In this document: positions 1 to 22,570 of the stretch, piece after piece
Layout: the number at the start of each line of letters is the position of its first letter
How positions within the stretch are numbered: position 1 is the stretch's first letter
Assembly (NCBI GenBank): GCA_965644315.1
Contig: CBFFRQ010000018.1
Location: 1 to 64,000 of the forward strand
DNA from: Caecitellus pseudoparvulus
Taxonomy: Eukaryota; Protista; Bigyra: Bicosoecida
Reading direction: 5' to 3'
DNA: 64,000 nucleotides
Notes under the pieces: model-generated
What the model saw: only the letters and a program-made list of their open reading frames with translations
Databases searched by the model: none
What the model was told of the DNA's origin: nothing
Made by a program: the position numbers and the translations under genes

Positions 1-1750
1 TAACCCTAACCCTAACCCTAACCCTAACCCTAACCCTAACCCTAACCCTAACCCTAACCCTAACCCTAACCCTAACCCTAACCCTAACCCTAACCCTAAC
101 CCTAACCCTAACCCTAACCCTAACCCTAACCCTAACCCTAACCCTAACCCTAACCCTAACCCTAACCCTAACCCTAACCCTAACCCTAACCCTAACCCTA
201 ACCCTAACCCTAACCCTAACCCTAACCCTAACCCTAACCCTAACCCTAACCCTAACCCTAACCCTAACCCTAACCCTAACCCTAACCCTAACCCTAACCC
301 TAACCCTAACCCTAACCCTAACCCTAACCCTAACCCTAACCCTAACCCTAACCCTAACCCTAACCCTAACCCTAACCCTAACCCTAACCCTAACCCTAAC
401 CCTAACCCTAACCCTAACCCTAACCCTAACCCTAACCCTAACCCTAACCCTAACCCTAACCCTAACCCTAACCCTAACCCTAACCCTAACCCTAACCCTA
501 ACCCTAACCCTAACCCTAACCCTAACCCTAACCCTAACCCTAACCCTAACCCTAACCCTAACCCTAACCCTAACCCTAACCCTAACCCTAACCCTAACCC
601 TAACCCTAACCCTAACCCTAACCCTAACCCTAACCCTAACCCTAACCCTAACCCTAACCCTAACCCTAACCCTAACCCTAACCCTAACCCTAACCCTAAC
701 CCTAACCCTAACCCTAACCCTAACCCTAACCCTAACCCTAACCCTAACCCTAACCCTAACCCTAACCCTAACCCTAACCCTAACCCTAACCCTAACCCTA
801 ACCCTAACCCTAACCCTAACCCTAACCCTAACCCTAACCCTAACCCTAACCCTAACCCTAACCCTAACCCTAACCCTAACCCTAACCCTAACCCTAACCC
901 TAACCCTAACCCTAACCCTAACCCTAACCCTAACCCTAACCCTAACCCTAACCCTAACCCTAACCCTAACCCTAACCCTAACCCTAACCCTAACCCTAAC
1001 CCTAACCCTAACCCTAACCCTAACCCTAACCCTAACCCTAACCCTAACCCTAACCCTAACCCTAACCCTAACCCTAACCCTAACCCTAACCCTAACCCTA
1101 ACCCTAACCCTAACCCTAACCCTAACCCTAACCCTAACCCTAACCCTAACCCTAACCCTAACCCTAACCCTAACCCTAACCCTAACCCTAACCCTAACCC
1201 TAACCCTAACCCTAACCCTAACCCTAACCCTAACCCTAACCCTAACCCTAACCCTAACCCTAACCCTAACCCTAACCCTAACCCTAACCCTAACCCTAAC
1301 CCTAACCCTAACCCTAACCCTAACCCTAACCCTAACCCTAACCCTAACCCTAACCCTAACCCTAACCCTAACCCTAACCCTAACCCTAACCCTAACCCTA
1401 ACCCTAACCCTAACCCTAACCCTAACCCTAACCCTAACCCTAACCCTAACCCTAACCCTAACCCTAACCCTAACCCTAACCCTAACCCTAACCCTAACCC
1501 TAACCCTAACCCTAACCCTAACCCTAACCCTAACCCTAACCCTAACCCTAACCCTAACCCTAACCCTAACCCTAACCCTAACCCTAACCCTAACCCTAAC
1601 CCTAACCCTAACCCTAACCCTAACCCTAACCCTAACCCTAACCCTAACCCTAACCCTAACCCTAACCCTAACCCTAACCCTAACCCTAACCCTAACCCTA
1701 ACCCTAACCCTAACCCTAACCCTAACCCTAACCCTAACCCTAACCCCTAA
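1..1750 (+). repeat. Telomeric repeat array (CCCTAA)n / (TTAGGG)n, chromosome end
   Basis: About 290 perfect TAACCC units starting at base 1; one variant unit (CCCCTAA) at the inner edge, 1744-1750. Confidence 0.99.
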
Positions 1751-4678
1751 CTTTCCAAATGTCAAGCTAATCACAAGTTGTGAAGTGCTAACATTGCCTA
1801 ATCCAGGCGCTCGTGCACCCAAGTGTGGTGTTGCACAGTGCTTGCTGGTTGGGTGGTGCGCACCGGGGCGGGGTAGTGCGAATTCCGCACACCATCGCAC
1901 CGTGGCTCCCAGTTTGCGCCCTCGGTCGGGGCATGCACCTGGGATCGACATCAAAAGCATCATTGACAAGCATCATGAACGCCCAAGTGGATCAAGTCCT
2001 GGGGGTCCTCTTCGTGGAGGGGTGCCTGAAGCGCAAGCAAGTGCTCGGCCCCAGAACAGGTGTCTTCACTGACATGCCACGTCGGGGTGCCGCACGCACC
2101 TTCGAGCTTGGAGGACCCCTGCCCAAGACTGATCATGATAGTTCATCTTCGGCACGGGACATGTGGCTCGAGGTCTATGGGGAAGCCGCCGAACGGCTGA
2201 TCCCAGGGCTGAGTGCGGAATTCGGCAACGCCAATGCGGCCCTGCGCCAGGGACCCACCGGATCGCCAACCATCCTCGTCACGCTCGGAAGTGAGGGTGA
2301 TTCACCAACAGTGGCACGTCAACTTCGCATTCTTGCTGCTCAAGAGGACGACTTCGCCATTCGAGTCGGCCAAGGTGGGTTCGTCGCCGTGGCCTACACC
2401 AACACCAAGCAGTTCGCATCGGCGAAGGCGAAAGTGAAGGTGAAGGCCCACCCCACCGCCATCCAAGTGGCCCACCAAGTGACCAAGGAAGCAACCGAAA
2501 TCGCCTGCCAGTCAGGTGATGTTGCCAAGGTCATGTGCCTCGTTAGGTCCCACTTCGACCATGGCCCCGTGCCAGCCCAAGCCGTCCGTCCCAGTGTCAG
2601 ACAATCCGTCCCCTCCGAGGGTGATGCACCTGTCGACACCAAGACACCATCGACCTGGACTGACACTCAGCTCGACAAGGCACCGAAGAAGAAGAAGACC
2701 CGTCGAGGCAAGCGAGGAAAGGGCAAGTCAGCCGGACGATCCCTCACCTTCGAGGACGTCTTCATCAAGAACGTCCGGCCACCTGCACCTCGACCAACCT
2801 CACCACCTGCCACCCAAGGCTCACCCAAAGATACCGTCACCACCCCTGTGGTGCATGCCATGTTGCCTTCATCAAGGGTGCAGCGGGGCGTCGACCGCAA
2901 GTGGCCGTCCCCCACCCCGTCGGGCGAGGCAAGCCCCGAGGTGCACCGGTATCGGCCGTCTGCAGCAGCAGCATGGGAGGTGATCACAAGGGTGGTGCCT
3001 CTTCATGACAGTGTGCGGACACCCGAGCACCTGGCCGAGTACCCCATCAAGCCTGGCCCTCTGGCCGACCTGCTGTCATCGACCCACGTGTACTCTAACG
3101 TGGGGGGGCGGGCCTGTGTCCAGGCCTGTCTCGAGACGGCAGCAGGGGAGAGGGTCTTCGAGGCTGGGGACCTCCTCCTACTCCAGCATGCAGCCACCAT
3201 CAACGCTGCCCAGCTTGCCTTCAAGCACATGGTCAGGCAGCTGGAGGGGGTGGTCAGTGACTCGTCCAGCTCGGACATCATGGACGTCGGCCAGAAGCCA
3301 CCCTCCCCCTTCCGCTCAGACGGGCAACGGGTGGCCGTCTTCCGCAACATGCTGCACCAGCACTCGCCGGATGACACCTTCCTGGCCCCAGGTACACCAC
3401 CAGTCCTGCTTCCCGGCCTGCACCTGCTCATCGACCGCATCAACCAAGGGTACCGTGCCCCAGCCGGGCATGATGACCTTGGCCAGGCCGGCGTCGACCC
3501 CAGCCAGGTTGATGAAGAGGGTGACCAAGAGGGGCACCTCGACGGAGTGCTGTATGCCTTCGCACTTCGAGAGGTGTGGACCGACAACACGGCCCATCTG
3601 CAGCTCATCCTCGTCGACCATGATCGAGGCAAGCTGGTGCTGTGGAACCCCGACATCCCTGACCTCCATGACGAGCTGCCCCTGCACAAGTGCATGACCC
3701 GGCTGGCAGCCGAAGGCATCAACGTCTTGTACCGGATCTGGACCACACCCGAGGCGGGCAGTCCAGCACCCTTCCGGGACAGGCTTCGAGGGGCACTCCA
3801 GTCTCTCCGAGATGACTTCCCCCCCCTGCCTCACAAGGCCACCGACGGCACCGTGCACCCCCAGACCCTCATCGCTGGCAAGGGCACAAGGGTGGCCATG
3901 CCTCATGGGCGGATGACCCGACAGCAGGCCGCCACCCTGGAGGCTGAGGTCAAGGACCCCCTCAAGCGGCTGGTGCCTGAAGACGGCGAGGGTCGCCTGC
4001 CCAAGGTCAAGGATGTGCCCCACATCTCGATCGGGCAGATGGGTGGACGCCTGATGTAAGTCACCTGTGGGGGCATACTCCCTGTGCCACACATGACTGA
4101 AGCTTTGTGTCGCGACCGACGCACATAGCTGACATCGGACATTGGAAAGTCCAACCCAACCTCACCATCACCAACCCAACATCGATACCAACACATCAGG
4201 ACTCGGCTCAGTGGAAGGGGAAGGCACTTGCAGCAAGATCTGTGAGGCCGCCCCCAAACCTGAGCCGAAGGGACAGCCGGGCTGGGTCGTGTGCTTGCAT
4301 CTCAGCAACACCCAGTCCGTGTCGAGTCCATATCCTCCAGCCCACACCGCCACCCAAGCCAAGCAAGTCGGGTCTCCACCCCTGGACATCGGACCGAGAC
4401 GGACGAGACTGGACTGGACGGACAAGACAAGAGTGGACCGAGACCTGGACCTACACCTCAAGACCATCCCACCGGGGCGGGCGCTGAAGCGCCAAGACAG
4501 ACGGCGACTTATACAACGGACACGAGTCTGTGCTAGTCGCAAAGCCGTGCAAGCGGTGCCGTCGTGGTGTCTGTGTCACTGCATTCTGTTGTGGCGCAGG
4601 TGGCACCACATGTCCAAGCCCAAGCTGTACCATGATGTAGCCTGCATGGAGGCAATCTGCAATGCATTGAGTAGCTAA
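1751..4678 (+). mobile_element. Telomeric non-LTR retroelement family A (non-autonomous; no endonuclease or RT)
   Basis: 5' UTR similar to B, including an identical block (TGCTAACATTGCCTAATCCAGGCGCTCGTGCACCCAAGTGTGGTGTTGCACAGTG). ORF homologous to the B N-terminus. 3' end TGCAATGCATTGAGTAG-CTAA runs into telomere repeats. Confidence 0.88.
1975..4059 (+). CDS. Element A protein, 694 aa; homologue of the N-terminal (ORF1-like / putative cysteine protease) region of B
   Basis: ATG at 1975 (MNAQVDQVLG) aligns with B MEAKTSQVLG. Shared blocks: FTDMPRRGAARTFELGG, CVQACLETAAG, PPVLLPGLH, DHDRG..VLWNP. Uninterrupted; stops where the APE domain begins in B. Confidence 0.88.
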   Translation: MNAQVDQVLGVLFVEGCLKRKQVLGPRTGVFTDMPRRGAARTFELGGPLPKTDHDSSSSARDMWLEVYGEAAERLIPGLSAEFGNANAALRQGPTGSPTILVTLGSEGDSPTVARQLRILAAQEDDFAIRVGQGGFVAVAYTNTKQFASAKAKVKVKAHPTAIQVAHQVTKEATEIACQSGDVAKVMCLVRSHFDHGPVPAQAVRPSVRQSVPSEGDAPVDTKTPSTWTDTQLDKAPKKKKTRRGKRGKGKSAGRSLTFEDVFIKNVRPPAPRPTSPPATQGSPKDTVTTPVVHAMLPSSRVQRGVDRKWPSPTPSGEASPEVHRYRPSAAAAWEVITRVVPLHDSVRTPEHLAEYPIKPGPLADLLSSTHVYSNVGGRACVQACLETAAGERVFEAGDLLLLQHAATINAAQLAFKHMVRQLEGVVSDSSSSDIMDVGQKPPSPFRSDGQRVAVFRNMLHQHSPDDTFLAPGTPPVLLPGLHLLIDRINQGYRAPAGHDDLGQAGVDPSQVDEEGDQEGHLDGVLYAFALREVWTDNTAHLQLILVDHDRGKLVLWNPDIPDLHDELPLHKCMTRLAAEGINVLYRIWTTPEAGSPAPFRDRLRGALQSLRDDFPPLPHKATDGTVHPQTLIAGKGTRVAMPHGRMTRQQAATLEAEVKDPLKRLVPEDGEGRLPKVKDVPHISIGQMGGRLM

Positions 4679-4690
4679 CCCTAACCCTAA
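4675..4690 (+). repeat. Interstitial telomere remnant at the A/B1 junction
   Basis: CTAACCCTAACCCTAA. Confidence 0.95.
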
Positions 4691-7600
4691 TGTCAACCTA
4701 ATCATAGGTTGTGCATTGCTAACATTGCCTAATCCAGGCGCTCGTGCACCCAAGTGTGGTGTTGCACAGTGTTTGGGTTGGCAGTGCAGCGCGCGGGTGG
4801 CAGCTGTGCGAATTCCGCACGCCATCACACCAGCGCAAGCAGTGTGCACTCCCCGCGGGAGTCTGCACCTGTGGATACCTGCATCACGTTCCATCATCAC
4901 CATGGAAGCCAAGACAAGTCAAGTACTGGGTGCGCTCTTCGTGGATAAGTGCATTGCTGCGCGAGCAATGCGTGGACCAAGAACGGGCGGATTTACTGAC
5001 ATGCCGCGCCGAGGCGCTGCACGAACGTTTGAGCTTGGCGGAGTGCCCATCGACGAAGACCCTTCAACATCTTCATCAACAATCCGAGATTCCTGGCTTC
5101 AAGTCTTTGGTGAGGCGGCGGAGGCCCAGTTCCCTGGCATCTGTGCGGAAGTTGGGCGTGGTGCAGCGGCGTTGCGCCGCCCACAAGGAACCCCAGCTGC
5201 CCTGCTAGTCTCGCTTGGCGGAGGAAGTGCCAGCGCAGAGCTGGCACGGAGCATACGCGAAGCAGCAGCACGTGAGGACGACTTCACTGTGCGCCTTGGA
5301 CGAGGTGGCTTCATGGCTGTGGTGTTTCCAGACACACGCCAGTTCGCCAACGCCAAGGCCAAGGTGCAGGTGACTGCCTCGGCCCCAGTGCTCAAGGCGG
5401 CCCACCTCCTGATGCCCCAAGCCACGAAGATTGCTGTTGAGACAGGTGACGTAAGCTCAGTCGTGAAGCTCGTCAAGTCCCATCTTCATGGCCACTCGCC
5501 GCCTGCTCGTCAAGACCGCCACTTCGTCCGACATTCCGTCCCCGTCAAGGGCGACGCCGCTGTCGACAAAGTGAACCGGCCTGCTCCACCCAAGCCTGCC
5601 CACACTGCTCATCATGTGCCAGGCAAGCGCAAGAAGGTACGCCGAGGACAGCGCTCGAAGTCTTCGAAGCCATCCAATGTCGTGCCAGGACGAACGTTCG
5701 CTGACCTCTTCAAGACTCCCCCGTCCGAGCCCTCAGCAAGCCGACGCCCCTTCCGTACAGTGATGCCTGCCCCCACCACTTCACCGCGACCCACGACGGA
5801 GGTTGTCCTTCCATCCTCTCGGGTGCGCACTGGGGCTAGCACGCGATGGGACCAACCGCCAACTGCTGAGCAAGACTCAAAGCAACAACACCATGCCCAG
5901 TCAGCAGCCCAACCCGCTCAGGCACCCAGCACTGAAACGGCCAGGACTTTGTTTGTTGGTGCAGACAAGCCAAGTGTCAAGTCTGAACCGCAGGCATGCG
6001 ACACGTTGGACATGCCAGACTCATCACCACCCTCCCCAGGAATCGTTGAAGTCGTTCGGATGGAAGACTGCAGCAGGCTCCCAGCGGATCTCCCAAGACA
6101 CAGAATCCCAACTGGGTCCCCGCTGGAACGCCTCCTTGCATCAAGCACAGTAGCTGGCAACCTTTCCGAGCGCCACTGTGTGCAAGCATGTCTGGAAACT
6201 GCAGCGGGTGCTCAGGTGCTGGAGCCCGAGGATCTTCTCCTCCTCCAACACGCAGCCACAGTGGAAGCAGCGCAACGCGCATTCAAAACCCTGCGCAAGC
6301 GAGAGGCTGCAGCCCTGTCTGACTCGTCCAGCTCGGATGTCCAGTGCCTGGCGCCGACTAGAGGCGTGGCCTCTTCGGATCCCGAGGACCAGCTAGCAGC
6401 ATTGGCCCGACTGCTGTACCGGTTCACTCCGGATGACTCGCTGCTGCAGCCCACGTCTCCCCCAGTGCTTCTGCCAGGTCTCCACATGCTGCTGAACCGT
6501 ATCAATGTTGGGCATGAAGACCTGCATGGCGGGAACAAGCACCATGGCGGTGTGAGTCCACAAGCGGTTGTGGACGAGGACGAGCAAGAGCGGTACTTCC
6601 ATGGCGTCCACTTCGCCTTTGCTCTCCACCGGCCCCAACAAGTCCACGCTGCCCACCTGACTCTCATACTGGCTGACCATGACCGTGGAGTCCTTGTCCT
6701 ATGGAACCCAGACACACCTGATGCATGCACTGAGCTGCCCATGCACAAGTGTATGCAGAGACTCTACGATGACGCAGTGGACATGGTGTACAGAGTGTCG
6801 GCAACCCCCCACACCGGGAACCCAGTCCCTCTTTGTGACAGGATCCGAGACATATTCCACAGTCTGCGCCAGTCCTTCCCTCCCCTTCCCTTTGTGGACC
6901 ACGAGGGGGCTGTCCACCTCAAGACGTTCATCGCGGGGAAGTCTACCAGGGTCACCATTCAAGCAGGCCGGCTCACTCGAGCACAGGCCTCTGCAGCAAG
7001 TGAGGCAAAGGAGCGCGACCCTCTGTTCCAACTCATTCCATCAGACGAGGATGCCATGCCCCCGAGGTGGGAGCAGAGTCCGTACACACCAGTGGGAAAG
7101 TCCAGCAGCATCCCAGTGTCGCTCGTGTCATGGAATGTTGCTGGGTCGTGTGGCCGCAACCTGCACAAGGTTCTCATCTGCGCCCAGTCTGTGTGCCTCC
7201 GTTCATCCAGACTGGTCCTCTGCCTCACGGAACCTGGTGGCCACGGCACACTTGACTCGGAAGTCATGGGGCTCCAATGTTTCAGGCCCTCCCCCAGATC
7301 GTCCACCCGGTCGCAGTGAAGTTGCGCTTCTGGTCGACCGTCGTCTACGCGCCACGCAGATAGTCAACCTTGGACTCGATGGGCGCTGTGTGGTCGCCTG
7401 CTCCATCCCCATGAAGCCAAGGCCCCTTGCTGTTATCGCGGCCTACGTGCCCAACTGGCACACGGCCCAGCGGAAGAAGCCACTTGCAGACCCAGACACT
7501 AAGCTGCCCCACCGCCAAGAGGTCTGGGAGCAGCTGGCCAACGCTGTAAAAAGTCTGCGAACCACGCATATGATCTCCCTCATGGGGGACCTCAACTGCC

Positions 7601-10600
7601 ATCCTGGTGATGGCGGACTTCCTGCTTGGGACGCAACATGCTGGCAGAACCGGACCGATGTCGCTGACCCCATCCCAGATGTCAAGGAGCTCGCAATCGT
7701 GTGCGAGCATGGTAACCTCGAGCCAGCCGGGCTCGCCGGGTGCTCCACCCATGCCACGAACGGCAGAGCCCTGGACCACATCCTTGTCTGCCCACTGCTC
7801 AAGGCCCAGGTCAAGGTGCCACACACAGTGACGACAACCTTCTCCAGTGCAGGCAAGCAGAATCCGGAGAAGTCGATCCTGAGTGACCACTACCTCCTGT
7901 CAGCAACAGTCCAAGTTGTGATCCCTCCACGGCCAAAGGGTGCCCGGCATGCCCACTCTTCCTTCTCTGTGCCGCCATGGTGGGCATCATCTACACGTGA
8001 AGGGCGCAGGGCACAGACCTTGCACAGGCGGCTGCTTGACTCATCCATCACTGGTGCCGCATCCCCCCACCCGGCCAAGCTGCAGACACCCTGCTGTCAG
8101 GCCTGGATGATTTGGTTGCCGACGCTGCCCGACAAGCCCATGCCAAGTGCAAAGTTGTGGCACCCCCGCTGCTTCAGGCCCTTGCCGACATTCGCACCCT
8201 CAGCTCTGTCAAGAAGCGGATGACAGTGAGGACAGGGCGGATCAAGAAGCAACTCCGCAAGCTTCATCGACGCCGGCACCTTCTTCAGCATAGCCAGTCA
8301 CCCCATGCCCCAGCTGACCTACGTTGTGCGGATGAACGAAAGCACATGCTCATGGAGGACCTTGCTGCCACCCATGTTGAAAGGAAGAAGGCGATGCGCA
8401 AGTGTACTCGGCTGGTTGCCAAGAAACACAAGGCCGCCATGTTCCAAGTCCAGCAGCGCATCCGGGACCTTGCCCGGCTTGACCCCTTCACTGCTCACCT
8501 GCATGTGCGGAAGCTGTCCGGCAGAAGGAGGAAGGGCACTTCGTCGTCCATCCAGTCAGTCATGGACGACAGCGGCACCCTCATCACAGACCCATCACAA
8601 GTGCGGGCTGTGGTCAGGGACCAGATGGCCCAGATCATCAGCCCCCCTCCACGGCAAGTCGTGTCCCTGAAGTTCGGACTGGGCCGGCTGCTCCCATCGG
8701 CCCCGACCCACATGTCGACTGAAGCCGCCTGGACCCCGAGCGTGGACCATATCCTGAAGAAGATCCAGTCCCTGAGCCTCCACCGCAACCCTGGCACAGG
8801 GCACTACCAGGCTGAGCATGTCAAGTATGCCAGCGAGGACTTCCGGAAGAGGTACGCTGCCGCTCTTCAACAGGCCATCAGCACCGGTTCATGTCCAAGT
8901 CAGTACCACAGTGGGGTGGGGACACTCATCCCCAAGACCGCCAGCCAGGCCGGGAGGGTGCAGACATACAGGCTCATTGTCTGCCGTCCCCCCAAGCCAA
9001 GCTCTTCTTCTCGGTCGTGGCCTCATGTGTCGAAGACTGGGTGCAGCACTGGATCTCACATGAGCAGGCAGGCTTCACCCATGCCCGCAACACCCACGAG
9101 CAGATCCTGGCCTTGCAGGAGGTGTCCACTGCCCACCTGCGCGCCAAGCCCACTGCCAGTGTCCTTGTCCTTTTCGTGGACTTCAAGAGTGCCTTTGACA
9201 CTGTCAGCCACGAAGCGATACTCGAGATCCTCGAGTCAGCAAGCCTCCCACAGCCCCTGCTCAGCTGCGTGAAGGACTACATGCAGCGCGCCACAGTGGC
9301 CATTCACACTGGCCATGGTCTTTGCGACCCCCTCCCAGTCACCAACGGGGTCCCCCAGGGTGGCGCACTGTCGCCTCTGTTGTTCAAGGTGGCTATTGAT
9401 GTGCTCTCTCAACGCCTGAGAGAGCTGCCAAGTCAGGGAGTGTCAGGGGCAGGAGTGCCGACACCCCGCGGCCACGTCACGCATACGCTCTATGCGGACG
9501 ATCTTGCTTGCCTCGCCACCACCCCTGCTGCCCTCCATCGGATGTTCCTTGAAGTCAAGGCCCTGGGCAGCCGGGTGGGCTTGGCCATCAACCCGCGCAA
9601 GTCCGGGGTCATGGTCCTCACCGGGGCGCAACAGGTCAATGGGGTGTCAGCCACGGAGCGGCGGAAGCTCATCTGGCGGTCCCGCTGGCTGAGGTCAGGG
9701 CAGTCCATGAAGGTCAAGGGGACACCCATCCAACGCACGAGCACCTACTCGTACTTGGGTGTCCCCCTGTCTGAAACTGTCAGCCGAACCCGACTGCTTG
9801 CCACGAGGCAGGCCACTCTGTCCTGCACTCGGGCTGGGTTCGGCTGCGGTGCCCTCCTCAGTAGTGCGTGGCTGAGTCCGATCCTGAAGCAGCGGATCGG
9901 CACTGCCTCCATCAACAGTGCCGCCGACTACATCTTGGCGTCCCAGGTCAGCAACTCGGTGCTACCTTTGCGGGACGTCGATCGTGGACTTGCCATCGCC
10001 TTCAGCAAGGCCCAGCTGGGGATGCAAAGCTCGCTAGCACGTATGCACAACTATGCAAAGCTTGCTGTGTGCGGCGTCTTGCCAACACACATCCGGGCGA
10101 CGAAACTCCGCAGCATTATCTTCATGAAGCTGCTGAAGAATGTCCAAGTGCCCACCCCCATGGCCAAGGCGCTGTCCATCAGCCTGCGCCAAGCCCTGGA
10201 CCTGCTGCCCTCCCCCCTGGACATGGCCAGCATCTTCCTGGCCAATGTCCGCCTCGACAGGCCAGGCGCTGGAGGCATCCCAGATCCATGGGCCTTACAC
10301 GGTCTACTCGACCTCTGGCTCCTTGGATGCCTCCCTGACCGCGCACGCCTGGAGGCTGTGTGCCTGGAGCCGCCGCCTGACTCTGCCCCAGACACACACG
10401 GGGTCGACATCACCGCTGGGATGGACCCCGCCCCCCCCAAGATCCAGCTGCTTGGACTCGCGGCAGCGGAGTCCTCAGATCTGTCGGCTGCCCCCCAGTT
10501 CCCGGACACCACCCCCTGGGCCACTCGGCAACGCGTCGTCGCCTCCTTCCTTCATGTGGCCCAGACGGTCAAGTGCGGTGCAGTTGGCTACACTCCCACG

Positions 10601-12441
10601 GGGGAGATGAAGGCCACCAGGCGTCCGAAGGAGTACCACATCGGTGTGGGTGCTCGCTTCTTCGCCTGGCTGCACCCGATCCCTTCCTCTGTGAACCCAG
10701 TCTTCTGGGTCCACGAAGGCGATCAGGAGAGACGTGTGAAGGTGCACCTGTGGCAGACGCTTCAAGTGTTCAACGGGGATGACACCCCGACACTGTTCAG
10801 CGCCTGCCCCCTGTGCCACAGCGTCTCCTGGTGCAGCCTGCAGGAGCACGTCCTTCTTGACTGCCCCCACCACGCCCTGGTCCCTGCGAGAAGGTCCGCC
10901 CTGTCAGAGGTGCGGAACCTCCTGTCCAGATCCAATGATGCAGTGAGGGGGGTCGCCAACTGCCAGTACCTCGAAGTACCCCCCACTGCTGGATGCTGTT
11001 GTCCACGCCGACGAAGGCCGCTTGTTGGGCCGCCCGTGTCGCCTGCTGCTGCTGCGACTGCTGCTGTGCGGCCAGTGGCCCCATCGGTGGGGCCAGCCTC
11101 CGGCACAACAGCCCTGGAGTCCCGAGGCAGCCGCGGTCCTGAGTAACCCCCATGTCACTCTCCGCGGCTCCTCGGGTCCACTCCGCCCCCCCAAGTACTG
11201 GCGCGAGGCCCTGGTAGCTGCCACGGGCCTCGCGGTATCTGCGTGGGACGCGGTGGTGACGTGCATGCTCAGCCTTACCTCTCGTGCCGACCGTCACATC
11301 CAGAGGCACGCCCGGTACCTCTGGTGGGCGGCGCATGGACGAACGTGTCCTCTCCCAGGTTACTCGGCTCCTGATCCGAGTACTGTGAGGAAGCATGTGC
11401 GGGACGTGAAGACGCGGCGCTTCGAGCGCACTTACTTCCCTGTCAAGTCCCCTCGTCGGCCGCCTCGCTCCTTCACGAGGCAGGCCACCTTGCTCGACTT
11501 CGGGCTGGCACGGCCGGAAGTCCACGAGGAACCTCCGGCACCGTCGATTTCATCCTCGGCGTCGTCCTCTGGGTCGTCCTTGAAGTGTCCATCTGACTCT
11601 GAGTAGCGGGCGATGTGTGTAGAGCGCGGCGCGAGGCGGTGCAAGCTTACGGCGTGGCGTGGTGACAACCACGGTCGTGGCTGAGCGAAGTGCGAGAGCA
11701 GGGTGATGTGATGTCCTTGATGAATGACGGAACCTGCGGAAAGTTGGAAGATGATGAAGTGAATATGTCCAGTATACTTACATGATGGCTCGGGGTCCAC
11801 GTGCAGCCCGAGATAGATTCCTGTGACGGGGCGCGCGGAATTTGGCAGGGTGAACACGCGGGCGCGCGGGGCAACGTCGCAGGCGGGGCGCACAGGTCCT
11901 CAGGGCCTTGAGTGATGAGTCAGCTGGATTATCTGTGAAGAAAAGGAGGTGTTCTTGGTGTTCTTGGTGCGCGGGTGGCGTTGTTCCGGCGGTGCGCGCT
12001 GCTACCACCGGCGTGGTGCAGTGCAACACCGTCGTGAAACGCCACCCGAAGGCGGCCACTGCGGCTCAGGACAGCGCGCAGTGGCCCCAGGCACACGTGC
12101 AGTGCCTGGCAAGGGCCAGGAGAAGCGGGGGGTTTCTGAATTATGAAGCGAAGTGTGGACTGGAACGAAGCAAGAGTGGGCCCGGCCCCCTCTGGCTCAG
12201 CCGACTGAGCCGAGAGGGCGCGGGCGGGGCAGTTCGACACGTATGGGCGGGCGCGGGCGCGCCCTAGCAAGCGGCGGCTCATACAACGGACGTATGTCCG
12301 TGATGGCTGCAGACCCACGAGAGTGGGAGCCGCTGTAGCGCTCCTGGTGTGCCTTGTGCACAGCAGCGAACGCTACATGTGATGCCCAAGCTGTATCGCG
12401 TGCAAGCGTGAAGGCGACATGCAATGCATTGAATGAACTAA
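4691..12441 (+). mobile_element. Full-length telomeric non-LTR retrotransposon family B, copy 1
   Basis: 7751-bp unit repeated in tandem at 12442-20196. Carries APE, RT and CCHC motifs and a ~830-nt 3' UTR ending in CTAA. Confidence 0.96.
4902..11606 (+). CDS. B1 polyprotein (N-terminal region + APE endonuclease + RT + CCHC); four apparent frameshifts, all in C homopolymers
   Basis: APE motifs SWNVAG, LTE, AYVP, GDLN, LDHI, SDH. RT motifs QAGF, VDFKSAFD, GVPQGGALSPLLF, YADDL, YLG. Knuckle CPLC..EHVLLDC. Breaks at C-runs near 7291, 8063, 8988 and 10979 are absent from copy 2. Confidence 0.92.
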
Positions 12442-15400
12442 TGTCAACCTAATCATAGGTTGTGCATTGCTAACATTGCCTAATCCAGGCGCTCGTGCAC
12501 CCAAGTGTGGTGTTGCACAGTGTTTGGGTTGGCAGTGCAGCGCGCGGGTGGCAGCTGTGCGAATTCCGCACGCCATCACACCAGCGCAAGCAGTGTGCAC
12601 TCCCCGCGGGAGTCTGCACCTGTGGATACCTGCATCACGTTCCATCATCACCATGGAAGCCAAGACAAGTCAAGTACTGGGTGCGCTCTTCGTGGATAAG
12701 TGCATTGCTGCGCGAGCAATGCGTGGACCAAGAACGGGCGGATTTACTGACATGCCGCGCCGAGGCGCTGCACGAACGTTTGAGCTTGGCGGAGTGCCCA
12801 TCGACGAAGACCCTTCAACATCTTCATCAACAATCCGAGATTCCTGGCTTCAAGTCTTTGGTGAGGCGGCGGAGGCCCAGTTCCCTGGCATCTGTGCGGA
12901 AGTTGGGCGTGGTGCAGCGGCGTTGCGCCGCCCACAAGGAACCCCAGCTGCCCTGCTAGTCTCGCTTGGCGGAGGAAGTGCCAGCGCAGAGCTGGCACGG
13001 AGCATACGCGAAGCAGCAGCACGTGAGGACGACTTCACTGTGCGCCTTGGACGAGGTGGCTTCATGGCTGTGGTGTTTCCAGACACACGCCAGTTCGCCA
13101 ACGCCAAGGCCAAGGTGCAGGTGACTGCCTCGGCCCCAGTGCTCAAGGCGGCCCACCTCCTGATGCCCCAAGCCACGAAGATTGCTGTTGAGACAGGTGA
13201 CGTAAGCTCAGTCGTGAAGCTCGTCAAGTCCCATCTTCATGGCCACTCGCCGCCTGCTCGTCAAGACCGCCACTTCGTCCGACATTCCGTCCCCGTCAAG
13301 GGCGACGCCGCTGTCGACAAAGTGAACCGGCCTGCTCCACCCAAGCCTGCCCACACTGCTCATCATGTGCCAGGCAAGCGCAAGAAGGTACGCCGAGGAC
13401 AGCGCTCGAAGTCTTCGAAGCCATCCAATGTCGTGCCAGGACGAACGTTCGCTGACCTCTTCAAGACTCCCCCGTCCGAGCCCTCAGCAAGCCGACGCCC
13501 CTTCCGTACAGTGATGCCTGCCCCCACCACTTCACCGCGACCCACGACGGAGGTTGTCCTTCCATCCTCTCGGGTGCGCACTGGGGCTAGCACGCGATGG
13601 GACCAACCGCCAACTGCTGAGCAAGACTCAAAGCAACAACACCATGCCCAGTCAGCAGCCCAACCCGCTCAGGCACCCAGCACTGAAACGGCCAGGACTT
13701 TGTTTGTTGGTGCAGACAAGCCAAGTGTCAAGTCTGAACCGCAGGCATGCGACACGTTGGACATGCCAGACTCATCACCACCCTCCCCAGGAATCGTTGA
13801 AGTCGTTCGGATGGAAGACTGCAGCAGGCTCCCAGCGGATCTCCCAAGACACAGAATCCCAACTGGGTCCCCGCTGGAACGCCTCCTTGCATCAAGCACA
13901 GTAGCTGGCAACCTTTCCGAGCGCCACTGTGTGCAAGCATGTCTGGAAACTGCAGCGGGTGCTCAGGTGCTGGAGCCCGAGGATCTTCTCCTCCTCCAAC
14001 ACGCAGCCACAGTGGAAGCAGCGCAACGCGCATTCAAAACCCTGCGCAAGCGAGAGGCTGCAGCCCTGTCTGACTCGTCCAGCTCGGATGTCCAGTGCCT
14101 GGCGCCGACTAGAGGCGTGGCCTCTTCGGATCCCGAGGACCAGCTAGCAGCATTGGCCCGACTGCTGTACCGGTTCACTCCGGATGACTCGCTGCTGCAG
14201 CCCACGTCTCCCCCAGTGCTTCTGCCAGGTCTCCACATGCTGCTGAACCGTATCAATGTTGGGCATGAAGACCTGCATGGCGGGAACAAGCACCATGGCG
14301 GTGTGAGTCCACAAGCGGTTGTGGACGAGGACGAGCAAGAGCGGTACTTCCATGGCGTCCACTTCGCCTTTGCTCTCCACCGGCCCCAACAAGTCCACGC
14401 TGCCCACCTGACTCTCATACTGGCTGACCATGACCGTGGAGTCCTTGTCCTATGGAACCCAGACACACCTGATGCATGCACTGAGCTGCCCATGCACAAG
14501 TGTATGCAGAGACTCTACGATGACGCAGTGGACATGGTGTACAGAGTGTCGGCAACCCCCACACCGGGAACCCAGTCCCTCTTTGTGACAGGATCCGAGA
14601 CATATTCCACAGTCTGCGCCAGTCCTTCCCTCCCCTTCCCTTTGTGGACCACGAGGGGGCTGTCCACCTCAAGACGTTCATCGCGGGGAAGTCTACCAGG
14701 GTCACCATTCAAGCAGGCCGGCTCACTCGAGCACAGGCCTCTGCAGCAAGTGAGGCAAAGGAGCGCGACCCTCTGTTCCAACTCATTCCATCAGACGAGG
14801 ATGCCATGCCCCCGAGGTGGGAGCAGAGTCCGTACACACCAGTGGGAAAGTCCAGCAGCATCCCAGTGTCGCTCGTGTCATGGAATGTTGCTGGGTCGTG
14901 TGGCCGCAACCTGCACAAGGTTCTCATCTGCGCCCAGTCTGTGTGCCTCCGTTCATCCAGACTGGTCCTCTGCCTCACGGAACCTGGTGGCCACGGCACA
15001 CTTGACTCGGAAGTCATGGGGCTCCAATGTTTCAGGCCCTCCCCCCCAGATCGTCCACCCGGTCGCAGTGAAGTTGCGCTTCTGGTCGACCGTCGTCTAC
15101 GCGCCACGCAGATAGTCAACCTTGGACTCGATGGGCGCTGTGTGGTCGCCTGCTCCATCCCCATGAAGCCAAGGCCCCTTGCTGTTATCGCGGCCTACGT
15201 GCCCAACTGGCACACGGCCCAGCGGAAGAAGCCACTTGCAGACCCAGACACTAAGCTGCCCCACCGCCAAGAGGTCTGGGAGCAGCTGGCCAACGCTGTA
15301 AAAAGTCTGCGAACCACGCATATGATCTCCCTCATGGGGGACCTCAACTGCCATCCTGGTGATGGCGGACTTCCTGCTTGGGACGCAACATGCTGGCAGA

Positions 15401-18400
15401 ACCGGACCGATGTCGCTGACCCCATCCCAGATGTCAAGGAGCTCGCAATCGTGTGCGAGCATGGTAACCTCGAGCCAGCCGGGCTCGCCGGGTGCTCCAC
15501 CCATGCCACGAACGGCAGAGCCCTGGACCACATCCTTGTCTGCCCACTGCTCAAGGCCCAGGTCAAGGTGCCACACACAGTGACGACAACCTTCTCCAGT
15601 GCAGGCAAGCAGAATCCGGAGAAGTCGATCCTGAGTGACCACTACCTCCTGTCAGCAACAGTCCAAGTTGTGATCCCTCCACGGCCAAAGGGTGCCCGGC
15701 ATGCCCACTCTTCCTTCTCTGTGCCGCCATGGTGGGCATCATCTACACGTGAAGGGCGCAGGGCACAGACCTTGCACAGGCGGCTGCTTGACTCATCCAT
15801 CACTGGTGCCGCATCCCCCCCACCCGGCCAAGCTGCAGACACCCTGCTGTCAGGCCTGGATGATTTGGTTGCCGACGCTGCCCGACAAGCCCATGCCAAG
15901 TGCAAAGTTGTGGCACCCCCGCTGCTTCAGGCCCTTGCCGACATTCGCACCCTCAGCTCTGTCAAGAAGCGGATGACAGTGAGGACAGGGCGGATCAAGA
16001 AGCAACTCCGCAAGCTTCATCGACGCCGGCACCTTCTTCAGCATAGCCAGTCACCCCATGCCCCAGCTGACCTACGTTGTGCGGATGAACGAAAGCACAT
16101 GCTCATGGAGGACCTTGCTGCCACCCATGTTGAAAGGAAGAAGGCGATGCGCAAGTGTACTCGGCTGGTTGCCAAGAAACACAAGGCCGCCATGTTCCAA
16201 GTCCAGCAGCGCATCCGGGACCTTGCCCGGCTTGACCCCTTCACTGCTCACCTGCATGTGCGGAAGCTGTCCGGCAGAAGGAGGAAGGGCACTTCGTCGT
16301 CCATCCAGTCAGTCATGGACGACAGCGGCACCCTCATCACAGACCCATCACAAGTGCGGGCTGTGGTCAGGGACCAGATGGCCCAGATCATCAGCCCCCT
16401 CCACGGCAAGTCGTGTCCCTGAAGTTCGGACTGGGCCGGCTGCTCCCATCGGCCCCGACCCACATGTCGACTGAAGCCGCCTGGACCCCGAGCGTGGACC
16501 ATATCCTGAAGAAGATCCAGTCCCTGAGCCTCCACCGCAACCCTGGCACAGGGCACTACCAGGCTGAGCATGTCAAGTATGCCAGCGAGGACTTCCGGAA
16601 GAGGTACGCTGCCGCTCTTCAACAGGCCATCAGCACCGGTTCATGTCCAAGTCAGTACCACAGTGGGGTGGGGACACTCATCCCCAAGACCGCCAGCCAG
16701 GCCGGGAGGGTGCAGACATACAGGCTCATTGTCTGCCGTCCCCCCCAAGCCAAGCTCTTCTTCTCGGTCGTGGCCTCATGTGTCGAAGACTGGGTGCAGC
16801 ACTGGATCTCACATGAGCAGGCAGGCTTCACCCATGCCCGCAACACCCACGAGCAGATCCTGGCCTTGCAGGAGGTGTCCACTGCCCACCTGCGCGCCAA
16901 GCCCACTGCCAGTGTCCTTGTCCTTTTCGTGGACTTCAAGAGTGCCTTTGACACTGTCAGCCACGAAGCGATACTCGAGATCCTCGAGTCAGCAAGCCTC
17001 CCACAGCCCCTGCTCAGCTGCGTGAAGGACTACATGCAGCGCGCCACAGTGGCCATTCACACTGGCCATGGTCTTTGCGACCCCCTCCCAGTCACCAACG
17101 GGGTCCCCCAGGGTGGCGCACTGTCGCCTCTGTTGTTCAAGGTGGCTATTGATGTGCTCTCTCAACGCCTGAGAGAGCTGCCAAGTCAGGGAGTGTCAGG
17201 GGCAGGAGTGCCGACACCCCGCGGCCACGTCACGCATACGCTCTATGCGGACGATCTTGCTTGCCTCGCCACCACCCCTGCTGCCCTCCATCGGATGTTC
17301 CTTGAAGTCAAGGCCCTGGGCAGCCGGGTGGGCTTGGCCATCAACCCGCGCAAGTCCGGGGTCATGGTCCTCACCGGGGCGCAACAGGTCAATGGGGTGT
17401 CAGCCACGGAGCGGCGGAAGCTCATCTGGCGGTCCCGCTGGCTGAGGTCAGGGCAGTCCATGAAGGTCAAGGGGACACCCATCCAACGCACGAGCACCTA
17501 CTCGTACTTGGGTGTCCCCCTGTCTGAAACTGTCAGCCGAACCCGACTGCTTGCCACGAGGCAGGCCACTCTGTCCTGCACTCGGGCTGGGTTCGGCTGC
17601 GGTGCCCTCCTCAGTAGTGCGTGGCTGAGTCCGATCCTGAAGCAGCGGATCGGCACTGCCTCCATCAACAGTGCCGCCGACTACATCTTGGCGTCCCAGG
17701 TCAGCAACTCGGTGCTACCTTTGCGGGACGTCGATCGTGGACTTGCCATCGCCTTCAGCAAGGCCCAGCTGGGGATGCAAAGCTCGCTAGCACGTATGCA
17801 CAACTATGCAAAGCTTGCTGTGTGCGGCGTCTTGCCAACACACATCCGGGCGACGAAACTCCGCAGCATTATCTTCATGAAGCTGCTGAAGAATGTCCAA
17901 GTGCCCACCCCCATGGCCAAGGCGCTGTCCATCAGCCTGCGCCAAGCCCTGGACCTGCTGCCCTCCCCCCTGGACATGGCCAGCATCTTCCTGGCCAATG
18001 TCCGCCTCGACAGGCCAGGCGCTGGAGGCATCCCAGATCCATGGGCCTTACACGGTCTACTCGACCTCTGGCTCCTTGGATGCCTCCCTGACCGCGCACG
18101 CCTGGAGGCTGTGTGCCTGGAGCCGCCGCCTGACTCTGCCCCAGACACACACGGGGTCGACATCACCGCTGGGATGGACCCCGCCCCCCCCAAGATCCAG
18201 CTGCTTGGACTCGCGGCAGCGGAGTCCTCAGATCTGTCGGCTGCCCCCCAGTTCCCGGACACCACCCCCTGGGCCACTCGGCAACGCGTCGTCGCCTCCT
18301 TCCTTCATGTGGCCCAGACGGTCAAGTGCGGTGCAGTTGGCTACACTCCCACGGGGGAGATGAAGGCCACCAGGCGTCCGAAGGAGTACCACATCGGTGT

Positions 18401-20196
18401 GGGTGCTCGCTTCTTCGCCTGGCTGCACCCGATCCCTTCCTCTGTGAACCCAGTCTTCTGGGTCCACGAAGGCGATCAGGAGAGACGTGTGAAGGTGCAC
18501 CTGTGGCAGACGCTTCAAGTGTTCAACGGGGATGACACCCCGACACTGTTCAGCGCCTGCCCCCTGTGCCACAGCGTCTCCTGGTGCAGCCTGCAGGAGC
18601 ACGTCCTTCTTGACTGCCCCCACCACGCCCTGGTCCCTGCGAGAAGGTCCGCCCTGTCAGAGGTGCGGAACCTCCTGTCCAGATCCAATGATGCAGTGAG
18701 GGGGGTCGCCAACTGCCAGTACCTCGAAGTACCCCCCCCACTGCTGGATGCTGTTGTCCACGCCGACGAAGGCCGCTTGTTGGGCCGCCCGTGTCGCCTG
18801 CTGCTGCTGCGACTGCTGCTGTGCGGCCAGTGGCCCCATCGGTGGGGCCAGCCTCCGGCACAACAGCCCTGGAGTCCCGAGGCAGCCGCGGTCCTGAGTA
18901 ACCCCCATGTCACTCTCCGCGGCTCCTCGGGTCCACTCCGCCCCCCCAAGTACTGGCGCGAGGCCCTGGTAGCTGCCACGGGCCTCGCGGTATCTGCGTG
19001 GGACGCGGTGGTGACGTGCATGCTCAGCCTTACCTCTCGTGCCGACCGTCACATCCAGAGGCACGCCCGGTACCTCTGGTGGGCGGCGCATGGACGAACG
19101 TGTCCTCTCCCAGGTTACTCGGCTCCTGATCCGAGTACTGTGAGGAAGCATGTGCGGGACGTGAAGACGCGGCGCTTCGAGCGCACTTACTTCCCTGTCA
19201 AGTCCCCTCGTCGGCCGCCTCGCTCCTTCACGAGGCAGGCCACCTTGCTCGACTTCGGGCTGGCACGGCCGGAAGTCCACGAGGAACCTCCGGCACCGTC
19301 GATTTCATCCTCGGCGTCGTCCTCTGGGTCGTCCTTGAAGTGTCCATCTGACTCTGAGTAGCGGGCGATGTGTGTAGAGCGCGGCGCGAGGCGGTGCAAG
19401 CTTACGGCGTGGCGTGGTGACAACCACGGTCGTGGCTGAGCGAAGTGCGAGAGCAGGGTGATGTGATGTCCTTGATGAATGACGGAACCTGCGGAAAGTT
19501 GGAAGATGATGAAGTGAATATGTCCAGTATACTTACATGATGGCTCGGGGTCCACGTGCAGCCCGAGATAGATTCCTGTGACGGGGCGCGCGGAATTTGG
19601 CAGGGTGAACACGCGGGCGCGCGGGGCAACGTCGCAGGCGGGGCGCACAGGTCCTCAGGGCCTTGAGTGATGAGTCAGCTGGATTATCTGTGAAGAAAAG
19701 GAGGTGTTCTTGGTGTTCTTGGTGCGCGGGTGGCGTTGTTCCGGCGGTGCGCGCTGCTACCACCGGCGTGGTGCAGTGCAACACCGTCGTGAAACGCCAC
19801 CCGAAGGCGGCCACTGCGGCTCAGGACAGCGCGCAGTGGCCCCAGGCACACGTGCAGTGCCTGGCAAGGGCCAGGAGAAGCGGGGGGTTTCTGAATTATG
19901 AAGCGAAGTGTGGACTGGAACGAAGCAAGAGTGGGCCCGGCCCCCTCTGGCTCAGCCGACTGAGCCGAGAGGGCGCGGGCGGGGCAGTTCGACACGTATG
20001 GGCGGGCGCGGGCGCGCCCTAGCAAGCGGCGGCTCATACAACGGACGTATGTCCGTGATGGCTGCAGACCCACGAGAGTGGGAGCCGCTGTAGCGCTCCT
20101 GGTGTGCCTTGTGCACAGCAGCGAACGCTACATGTGATGCCCAAGCTGTATCGCGTGCAAGCGTGAAGGCGACATGCAATGCATTGAATGAACTAA
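12442..20196 (+). mobile_element. Full-length telomeric non-LTR retrotransposon family B, copy 2
   Basis: 7755-bp near-identical tandem copy; the differences I can see from copy 1 are C-run lengths. Confidence 0.96.
12653..19361 (+). CDS. B2 polyprotein (N-terminal region + APE + RT + CCHC); two apparent frameshifts in C homopolymers
   Basis: Track ORFs 12467-15115, 14644-16422 and 16413-19361. Breaks at C-runs near 14556 and 16395 are absent from copy 1. Confidence 0.92.
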
Positions 20197-20224: not shown

Positions 20225-20726
20225 CTTGCGTGTCCATGAAGTGTGCGGCGCGCTCTGTGACGTGGGCAGTGGTGAATGCGCGGGTGCTGGTGTGCGCGGT
20301 CAAGTTCCGCACCACGCACCCGGCCGAATACCCGCGCAGAGCCGCAGCATACACCCCATGAAGGGCTCAGGGAGGCTCCCGAGAGCCACAGATAACGTGG
20401 GATGTGATTTTGGATTATGGTCTCTTGTCCAGAGTGCTCGGATGCCTGGGTGTGCTCTGGTGTGCCCCAGGTGTCTGGCGCTGGCGGAGCAAGGGATGAA
20501 GTGAAGCGGAGGAGGGCCAAGATGATGAATTGGAGCGGGCAGGGACCTGCCCTAGCAAGCGACGACATATATAACGGGCGCAAGCCTGTGTTTGTTGCGT
20601 ATCCGCGCCAAGCGGTAGCCGCTGTGGCGTCCTACATGTGCAGAGGTGCATTGTGGGGCGCCCGTGTGACGCTCCAGCTGTACAGTGTCAAGCGACGCTG
20701 AGGTGAAATGCATTGTGAATTGCTAA
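20225..20726 (+). mobile_element. 5'-truncated family C element (3' UTR fragment)
   Basis: Diverged match to ~22060-22570; ends AAATGCATTGTGAATTG-CTAA, followed by CCC. Confidence 0.88.
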
Positions 20727-20729
20727 CCC

Positions 20730-21003
20730 AAGCAGGAGTGGACCCGGCCCCCTCTGGCTCAGCCGACTGAGCCGAGAGGGCGCGGGCGGGGCAGTTCGAC
20801 ACGTATGGGCGGGCGCGGGCGCGCCCTAGCAAGCGGCGGCTCATACAACGGACGTATGTCCGTGATGGCTGCAGACCCACGAGAGTGGGAGCCGCTGTAG
20901 CGCTCCTGGTGTGCCTTGTGCACAGCAGCGAGCGCTACATGTGATGCCCAAGCTGTATCGCGTGCAAGCGTGAAGGCGACATGCAATGCATTAAATGAGC
21001 TAA
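20730..21003 (+). mobile_element. 5'-truncated family B element (last ~270 nt of the 3' UTR)
   Basis: Near-identical to ~12168-12441 with a few substitutions; ends in CTAA, followed by CCCTAAC. Confidence 0.92.
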
Positions 21004-21010
21004 CCCTAAC

Positions 21011-21745
21011 ATCCTGCTGCACTGCACCCACCACGAACTCACCCTAGCACGCCAACACACGATGGCCAAGTTCAAGGAACTGGCCAACAGGTCAGCTGTG
21101 CCCGAGTCCGTGGCGGGCCAGGCGGAGTGCCTGCCCATCCCCCCCAAGATCCGTGAAGCCCTTCTCCATGCTCCCGACCCAGAGCCGCGAAGACTGCGGG
21201 ACCTCGAGGTCCTCCACAGGCTCTTGCTCTGCGGGCAGTGGCCCCACCGGTGGGGGCTGGCCGACGACGAGCAGCCCGTCACCATGAGAGAGGCTGCCGT
21301 CCTCTCCTACCCCCACCTCGTCCACCGTGCTGGCCCCACCCGTGTCCGTGCCCCAACTGCATGGCGAGACATCCTGCGAGGCGCGGTCGAGTTCACAGCA
21401 AAGGCGTGGCGGGTGACAGTCACTTACATGATGCGTATGACTGATGCCCACCACCTTGCTGTCCAGAGGCATGCAGAGTACCTGTGGTGGGCAGTACATG
21501 GGCGCGGGGCGCCGCTGCCTGGCCGCACGCAGCCAGTGCGGTCAGCGGCCACGCGGCACACGCGCAGGCCACGCACTCGCCGCAGGGAACGCACCTTCTT
21601 CCCTGCCAAGGCGGGCCAAGTGCCGTCCACGGAGGGCAAGGTGCAGAGGACGCTGCAGCACTTCATGGGGCCACCACCAGCCCATCCAGACGCTGACGAT
21701 GACGGGGAGGGTCTCGGTAGTTCCTGTGAAGAGAGCGAAGAGTGA
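21011..21745 (+). pseudogene. C-terminal fragment of the family C polyprotein
   Basis: ILLHCTHH...RLLLCGQWPHRWG...EAAVLS.PH...QRHAEYLWWAVHGR...ERTFFP matches B VLLDCPHH...RLLLCGQWPHRWG...QRHARYLWWAAHGR...ERTYFP. Confidence 0.9.
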
Positions 21746-22570
21746 GGCGGAACGCAGGCGTACGTGCATGGCGTGGAACAGCCACGCTTGTGGCTGCGCC
21801 TACCCTCCACCCGCGTCCTGACGTGATGAACCTGTGTGAAGCGTGGTGATAACCACGGTAGCAAGAAACAGTCGACCAAGACCTTACCTTTTATCCCCTT
21901 TATAGCCTGCGAGTAGCGGTGGAGTGAGCGGGAGCGTGCCTCGGGCCGCGGTGCGTGTGCAGCCGCAGTGCTGCACGGCCACGGCCCGGCTGGCGGCTGA
22001 CGACGAAGCAAGCCCACTCACCGTGAAACCAGGGCGTGACGGGTTGCAGAAGAAGGTCTTCTTCCTTCCTGTGTGCCTCTTCATGCGCGCGGTGCGCTCT
22101 GTGGTGCGGGCGCATGTGTGCGCGCGGGTGCTGGTGTGCGCGGTCAATTTCCGCACCACGCACCCGGCCGAGTTCCCGCGCAGAGGCGGAGCACACACCT
22201 CATGGAAGGCGCAGAGAGGCCTATGAGGCCCACAGAGGAGGTGGGTGAGGAATTTGGATTATGATCTGTTGTCAAGACTGCGCGGATGCCTGGGTGTGCT
22301 CTGGTGAGCCCCAGGTGTCTGGCGCGAGAGGAGCAAGGGATGAAGTGAAGCGGAGGAGGGACAAGAAGATGAATTGGAGCGGGCAGGGACCTGCCCTAGC
22401 AAGCGGCGGCAGATAAAACGGGCGCAAGCCTGTGTTTGTTGCGAATCCGCGCCAAGCGGTAGCCGCTGTGGCGTCCTACATGTGCAGAGGTGCATTGTGG
22501 GGCGCCTGTGTGACGCTCAAGCTGTACAGTGTCAAGCGACGCTGAGGTGAAATGCATTGTGAATTGCTAA
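21011..22570 (+). mobile_element. 5'-truncated family C element (ORF C-terminus + 3' UTR)
   Basis: Begins directly after CTAACCCTAAC; encodes a homologue of the B C-terminus; ends AATGCATTGTGAATTG-CTAA. Confidence 0.9.

Follow-up and report, generated by a model that had tools for sequence, protein, structure and literature searches.

The window analysed here, 64,000 nucleotides (nt) at the start of contig CBFFRQ010000018.1 of the marine bicosoecid Caecitellus pseudoparvulus (assembly GCA_965644315.1; positions 1 to 64,000), opens with a telomeric array in which one element, designated A, encodes a protein and has no reverse transcriptase (RT). It is likely that A is a telomeric retrotransposon derived from long interspersed nuclear elements (LINEs) with one open reading frame (ORF) for an APE endonuclease domain and an RT, that it borrows the RT of such relatives, and that its own protein is cis-selfish. 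A first-pass annotation, made from the DNA letters alone, had noticed an uninterrupted ORF of 694 amino acids (aa) in A that is diverged from the N-terminal region of the neighbouring element B, retains conserved blocks and ends almost exactly where the APE domain of B begins. Both points held: identity was 47% over 682 aligned codons, with conserved blocks, and the final residues of A aligned to B residues just ahead of the APE start VSLVSWNV (within a few residues).

A multicopy family with a fixed stop codon

We searched the 30.6 Mb assembly (215 contigs) for further copies. The last 24 nt of the A ORF had 58 exact occurrences on 45 contigs and none with one to three mismatches. Whether all copies stop at the same codon was a check proposed by the first-pass annotation; all 58 ran into the same stop and the same 3' untranslated region (UTR), and all flanks examined were telomeric-array DNA. 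A 27-mer of the 5' hallmark occurred 79 times with 0–2 mismatches, and A accounted for 51 of these 79 elements with an intact 5' hallmark, making it the most abundant unit. When the last 169 aa of A were used as query and all 113 candidates were scored, A copies showed 95–100% identity, followed by the next group (52–53%), B (49%) and other elements (41–48%). Because the best non-A match reached only 52–53%, the assembly contains no A-type parent with APE and RT, in agreement with the earlier view that A is not a fresh deletion of B. Among the loose ends listed for the short-read unitigs that tile A in the source sample, none branches near the stop. Approximately 22 assembled copies lack one G of a G7 run. 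A frameshifted subfamily was considered and rejected: a short-read unitig (1811–3283) crosses this site without the variant, and the deficient copies were therefore read as long-read errors.

We give almost no weight to the explanation that A is an assembly artefact or was recently derived by deletion from a full-length element of nearly the same sequence. The assembly is indeed built from long reads with homopolymer errors; however, no element lies between 52% and 97% identity to A, four-fold sites between A and B are near saturation (33% vs 27% random), and the same structure was found in independent metagenomes and in short reads. For the assembled genome this explanation is refuted, and such a parent could lie only in unassembled sequence. 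A is a long-lived RT-less lineage rather than a deleted copy, and the stable non-autonomous lineage suggested at first pass is borne out by the single stop of the 58 copies and of alleles from other samples.

The parents of A are single-ORF polyprotein elements of 2,200–2,390 aa. Indels in poly-C runs are the sole difference between B1 and B2, the two B copies in the window, and interrupt the reading frame of each copy at other positions; the B copy of contig C34 is open over 2,386 aa, from the N-terminus through the RT. Six or more related families show frames of 2,200–2,340 aa, with RT identities to B of 82, 69, 68, 67, 60 and 58%, and in a metagenomic contig the N-terminal region is continuous in frame with APE and RT. 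The APE catalytic motifs, RT motifs and CCHC knuckle of B are intact; Pfam detected APE and no second nuclease, and no restriction-like endonuclease was evident after the CCHC motif. A thus corresponds to the first third of a polyprotein, and the usual meaning of "ORF1" does not apply to it. Each of the autonomous families has the A-homologous region in its own polyprotein. On shared columns, A and B are 42% identical, compared with 39–45% among the autonomous families. The family with 82% RT identity and B appear marginally closest to A, in a comparison that, for families other than A, B and C (the family of further fragments in the window), used coordinates, identities and partial flanks and took relationships from identities.

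The 3' UTR of A contained no recognizable remnant of APE or RT. Its A/C richness, claimed earlier, amounted to a mild bias only: the A+C content is 0.56 (0.61 in the unique part), compared with 0.445 in the B UTR and 0.55 in the A ORF. A 178-aa frame in this UTR was rejected as a gene since indels break it in other alleles. A splice-donor consensus, GTAAGT (4056–4061), overlaps the A stop and is unchanged in the alleles, and A often lies immediately upstream of autonomous elements. Conditional autonomy could therefore be imagined, in which read-through transcripts splice the A ORF to the APE-RT of the downstream element. We regard this as highly improbable: the seven GTAAGT sites in the window equal the chance expectation, five of the six letters are fixed by the final Met and stop codons or by a two-base coincidence, no A-APE joint was seen in the DNA data, and most downstream neighbours are 5'-truncated beyond the APE start.

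Additional features were observed among the relatives of A. A distant RT family, 34–35% identical to B (C147:54266–55747, C42:707368–708852, and on C136, C134, C151 and C171), has frames of up to 3,394 aa; some of its copies adjoin A arrays, and it has no match to the A N-terminal region. The B and C polyproteins end with motifs that we take to be PIP-box-like and possibly PCNA-binding (QATLLDFG, 19230–19255, and QRTLQHFM, ~21645–21670, respectively), with an acidic/serine tail after the motif. Distal C-family copies with many apparent stops were found at the ends of contigs C5, C42, C53, C134, C173, C194 and C211. Editing-type hypermutation was considered for these damaged copies and was not seen in the single copy compared, in which the differences were mostly gaps; the apparent stops are probably low-coverage long-read errors.

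Selection on the ORF and a candidate protease domain

Four metagenome contigs from ENA contained A alleles that were ~97% identical and had the same stop, UTR and telomeric flanks, and a JGI contig contained the 3' third of an A allele. Compared with A in the window, the ENA alleles had 40 synonymous and 19–20 non-synonymous differences, giving a ratio of non-synonymous to synonymous rates (dN/dS) of 0.16–0.22, depending on transition weighting (binomial p<1e-7). For a further allele, the rows displayed included 23 codons with synonymous and 8 with non-synonymous changes. Since the four ENA alleles are nearly one lineage, the evidence amounts to two to three independent comparisons. By region, dN/dS between A alleles was 0.20–0.25 in aa 1–200, 0.46 in the linker and 0.10 in aa 345–694. 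No indels were present in 2,082 nt of the ORF versus three in 616 nt of the 3' UTR. Since all compared alleles share the truncation, this selection postdates it. The first-pass annotation had expected a dN/dS well below 1 as opposed to a neutral value of about 1, and the ratio between alleles was indeed low; its proposed comparison of A with B (0.28–0.44) was rejected as a test of selection on A because synonymous sites are near saturation and selection before the truncation is mixed in. Judged by these substitution patterns, the A ORF is under purifying selection as a short element. Marine metagenomes and aquaculture samples also contained A alleles, as did runs carrying the names of five other organisms; the host is widespread and a frequent contaminant.

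The A protein has three parts: a domain at aa 1–200, a Pro/Ser/Thr-rich linker with a basic cluster, and a domain at aa 337–640. Pfam gave no match to A, whole or in parts; the translation contains no CCHC knuckle, and neither Pfam nor sequence searches revealed homology to Gag or ORF1p. Sequence searches with the A protein returned A alleles only, and two metagenome scans had no matches. In the C-terminal domain, C381 (in CVQAC) is conserved in 4/4 families, H541 in 3/3 and N558 (in WNPD) in 4/4, where sequence was available. The order and spacing of these Cys, His and Asn residues resemble those of papain-fold proteases, especially Josephin. A full-length AlphaFold model of the A protein was unusable, with a predicted local distance difference test (pLDDT) score of 34. 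In a model of the aa 337–640 domain (pLDDT 46), the Cys starts a helix, and the His and Asn lie on adjacent strands. A Foldseek search with this model returned mostly papain-fold proteases (best E 0.01, sub-threshold), and structural re-alignment recovered Josephin-2 (Z 4.8, root-mean-square deviation 3.3, 94 residues) as well as ataxin-3 and AvrPphB, also below threshold. A language-model atlas search placed Peptidase C58 at the top (0.87) and also listed C39; a score below 0.9 is taken as a lead. The Josephin hidden Markov model (PF02099) matched host genes and not the elements, PDB sequence searches based on domain profiles yielded noise, and helical hairpins filled the results of a wide structure search. 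With this evidence, it is fairly likely that aa 337–640 of A adopt a papain-type cysteine protease fold with C381, H541 and N558 as predicted catalytic residues, which lends some support to the earlier suggestion of a "processing protein".

If this domain is a protease, A could be a protease-only satellite: it would encode the N-terminal product normally released by self-cleavage of the polyprotein at the APE boundary, process the polyproteins of helpers in trans and take over their APE-RT for its own RNA. We consider this possibility rather unlikely.

Termini, insertion and the role of the A protein

The conserved termini noted at first pass were confirmed: ~165 nt at the 5' end and ~200 nt at the 3' end of A are common to B and C. 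The first 99 nt of A fold with z -2.4, and Rfam detected no ribozyme, including no HDV-like match, or known RNA family in A. The last ~200 nt of A, B and C form a common predicted fold in which 96% of cells are paired, as opposed to 32–50% in slid controls, and 14/47 pairs show double-sided change. The 3' end of A alone folded no better than shuffles (z -1.24), so that the support for this fold is covariation only. In every family, the 3' end is preceded at a distance of a few bases by an 8–10-nt palindrome (4663–4672 in A; CAATGCATTG in A and B). A has no poly(A); TAAC follows its 3' end in 30/30 loci, and its 5' end is preceded by TAAC (25 loci) or AAAC (5 loci). The unit first annotated as 1751–4678 is therefore a real element whose exact limits are 1752–4675, followed by TAAC. 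Spacers beside A can be as short as four bases or as long as dozens of repeats, some of them degenerate, the inner neighbour varies by locus, and 5'-truncated copies keep the exact 3' end, with homology between loci ending at element boundaries. The outermost position ascribed to A holds in the window and not generally, a non-A element being distal on 14/45 contigs.

Some full copies are immediately preceded by very short 3' fragments of A (~10–25 nt, also 100–200 nt), several of which have the same start point (junctions L008, L013, L007 and L027; contigs C140, C187 and C190). Either abortive cDNA synthesis with template jumping or the copying of junctions could account for them.

All elements share one orientation, with the C-rich strand as the sense strand and the 5' end facing outward, so that the cDNA would lengthen the G-rich 3' end in the manner of telomerase. 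The Bombyx element TRAS is also oriented on the C-rich strand. The host encodes TERT (PF12009, the telomerase RNA-binding domain, scored 79 bits within a frame of 1,389 aa), and the arrays are thus guests in telomerase-made telomeres.

We propose the following origin and life cycle. Sequence comparison indicates that a stop at the boundary ahead of APE reduced the coding capacity of a polyprotein gene to its N-terminal third, and that a short UTR of unrelated sequence took the place of the APE-RT region, with the 5' hallmark and the 3' RNA fold kept. A RNA would be transcribed from its own 5' end. Polarity and junctions suggest that the APE-RT of an autonomous family recognizes the common 3' fold and primes cDNA synthesis on the telomeric G-strand, where the terminal UAAC of the RNA may pair with GTTA of the primer, and telomerase would then cap the new end. 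The A protein is expected to act mainly in cis on its own RNA, in ribonucleoprotein (RNP) assembly, nuclear or telomere delivery and capture of the borrowed RT; its Cys-His-Asn domain may shield the RNP from ubiquitin-type degradation or cut a polyprotein. With a size of 2.9 kb versus 7.7 kb, A would out-copy its helpers.

Several observations weigh against this scheme. Among the sequencing runs that matched A there was no RNA run, one RNA-labelled run being probably DNA. The protease assignment rests on low-confidence models, and all of its searches were sub-threshold. The covariation in the 3' fold comes from only three independent lineages, which makes it supportive and not proof. In addition, the near-zero divergence among A copies also fits recombination between chromosome ends. 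A might accordingly have spread mainly by break-induced replication and gene conversion, with its protein kept as a host-useful, dominant-negative brake on autonomous elements. The essentially identical copies and the presence of the same ~25-nt 3' fragment on several contigs agree with this idea, and such copying has been shown for MoTeR arrays (10.1101/845669). However, homology between loci stops exactly at the element ends with different neighbours at each locus, and the 3' fold, the target of RT recognition, is conserved. We judge this scenario improbable.

A mutual dependence of the HeT-A type, in which the A protein provides in trans a targeting or processing function needed by autonomous elements or by the host telomere, was also weighed. 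A is the most abundant unit, its ORF is constrained and stops at a natural domain boundary, and TART Gag depends on HeT-A Gag to reach telomeres (PMC5537684). Against it, no autonomous family lacks this region or, where sequence is available, its Cys, His and Asn residues; the host has TERT and long perfect repeat tracts; and several arrays on A-free contigs (e.g., C67, C105 and C163) hold autonomous elements. The earlier suggestion that A may supply a targeting or processing protein was not supported in the sense of a protein which autonomous elements need, and mutual dependence seems unlikely. A cis-selfish protein is preferred because each autonomous family already encodes the region, unlike TART, which needs HeT-A Gag, and because selection at the level of the element explains both the constraint on the ORF and the numerical lead of A.

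Array organization and comparison with known systems

The telomere tract, A, B1, B2 and older 3' fragments all lie on one strand (Table 1). The first host gene inward of the array (22877–32191, minus strand) encodes a 3,104-aa RCC1-repeat, TIG and TRP-like membrane protein. An intronless gene for a 5,714-aa TRRAP/Tra1 (36371–53545, minus strand) contains a FAT domain; the PI3K and FATC domains present in relatives were not matched by Pfam. The best named relative of this protein is from an oomycete, which makes a stramenopile host probable. A tandem repeat at 62473–63406 (222-bp unit, 4.2 copies, 99% identical) lies inside a coding frame.

Table 1. Parts of element A and of the surrounding array (positions within the window)
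Feature	Position	Strand	Remarks
(TAACCC)n telomere tract	1..1751	+	Caps 5' end of A; 1,751 nt, 291.7 copies, 99% matches
Element A, whole unit (2,924 nt)	1752..4675	+	47 matches ~100% full-length; ends fixed in 30/30 loci
A 5' UTR	1752..1974	+	First 15 nt near-identical to full-length B; 1 substitution/223 nt between alleles
A 5' hallmark, candidate internal promoter or RNA element	1787..1845	+	Conserved in A and autonomous families
A ORF, 694 aa from ATG, ending GRLM*	1975..4059	+	Homologous to first ~740 aa of autonomous polyprotein
N-terminal domain, aa 1–200	1975..2574	+	Conserved in all families; dN/dS 0.20–0.25; candidate RNA-binding/targeting part
Basic cluster like a nuclear localization signal, aa 238–251	2686..2727	+	Within Pro/Ser/Thr-rich linker; conserved in four families
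Candidate papain/Josephin-type cysteine protease, aa 337–640	2983..3894	+	C381 (3115–3117), H541 (3595–3597), N558 (3646–3648)
A-specific 3' UTR	4060..4473	+	No recognizable APE/RT remnant; indels tolerated between alleles
Conserved 3' terminal RNA structure (predicted)	4474..4675	+	Common to B and C; no poly(A); TAAC always next
Two-repeat telomeric spacer, A to B1	4676..4688	+	
Autonomous relative B1 (N-terminal region, APE, RT, CCHC)	4689..12438	+	Frames here broken by poly-C indels
Autonomous relative B2	12440..20193	+	99.9% identical to B1
Older 5'-truncated 3' fragments, C and B families	20225..22570	+	Innermost part of array

RT-less protein-coding partners are already known; A resembles HeT-A and HAL1 in its way of working and MoTeR2 in position, and is a member of none of these groups. 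HeT-A of Drosophila is RT-less, protein-coding, under selection and dominant in polarized head-to-tail telomeric arrays with the 3' end centromere-ward (PMC5537684), all of which apply to A. Approximately 40% of Drosophila telomeric families are ORF1-only, and recurrent RT loss appears particular to telomeric Jockey elements (PMC13534243). However, the parent of A is a single-ORF polyprotein, so that a stop codon at a domain boundary, and not loss of a separate ORF2, gave rise to A. Its protein lacks Gag homology and a zinc knuckle and has a protease-like domain, the element has neither poly(A) (30/30 ends run into TAAC) nor a long 3' UTR, and its host keeps TERT and TTAGGG repeats. The convergence with HeT-A proposed at first pass is supported for the architecture and not for telomere maintenance. 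HAL1 (half-L1) is likewise a non-autonomous LINE derivative coding only for the first protein (PMC5753468); in contrast, A did not come from a two-ORF L1 with ORF1p, is telomere-specific and has no poly(A).

The MoTeR1/MoTeR2 elements of Magnaporthe form an autonomous/non-autonomous pair in TTAGGG telomeres of a telomerase-positive host, arranged head-to-tail with half to many repeats between units and with common termini (10.1101/845669). MoTeR1 uses a restriction-like endonuclease. MoTeR2 has an unrelated 786-bp middle without known function between termini identical to those of MoTeR1; in A, by contrast, the termini have diverged and the retained ORF is homologous and under selection. TRAS and SART of Bombyx are also APE-type LINEs that target telomeric repeats and need the 3' UTR for recognition (PMC4700185), but have two ORFs and poly(A), target TTAGG and are autonomous, and no ORF1-only partner is described in PMC4700185. 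Dualen/RandI (Josephin-like, PMC8557442) and NeSL/Utopia (Ulp1-like, PMC4640811) encode a cysteine protease ahead of the catalytic domains within a single long frame, an order comparable to the candidate protease ahead of the catalytic domains in the single ORF of B-type elements. B appears to differ from Dualen/RandI, in which APE and a restriction-like endonuclease occur together, in that only APE was evident, and A differs from both groups in encoding the protease-like part without any RT. Finally, the L1Tc/NARTc pair of trypanosomes also shares a short 5' hallmark (Pr77) between autonomous and non-autonomous members (PMC3383444); NARTc is short and non-coding, unlike A, which in addition has no HDV-like ribozyme match.

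The A-type architecture arose independently of HeT-A and from a different kind of parent, in a stramenopile-like host with telomerase. In the literature searched, with incomplete coverage, we did not find a description of derivation from a polyprotein by a boundary stop, of an RT-less element retaining a protease-like domain, or of such an element in a telomerase-positive protist host. This independent origin favours the view that RT-less coding passengers are a product of telomere targeting itself. ORF1-only telomeric elements of Drosophila are often read as telomere-maintenance mutualism; A offers a telomerase-positive contrast, in which cis-selfish and helper roles can be tested without the confounding loss of telomerase. 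Because the N-terminal region was kept by selection after the enzymes were lost, A also hints at a role of this region, and of protease domains, in single-ORF LINEs.

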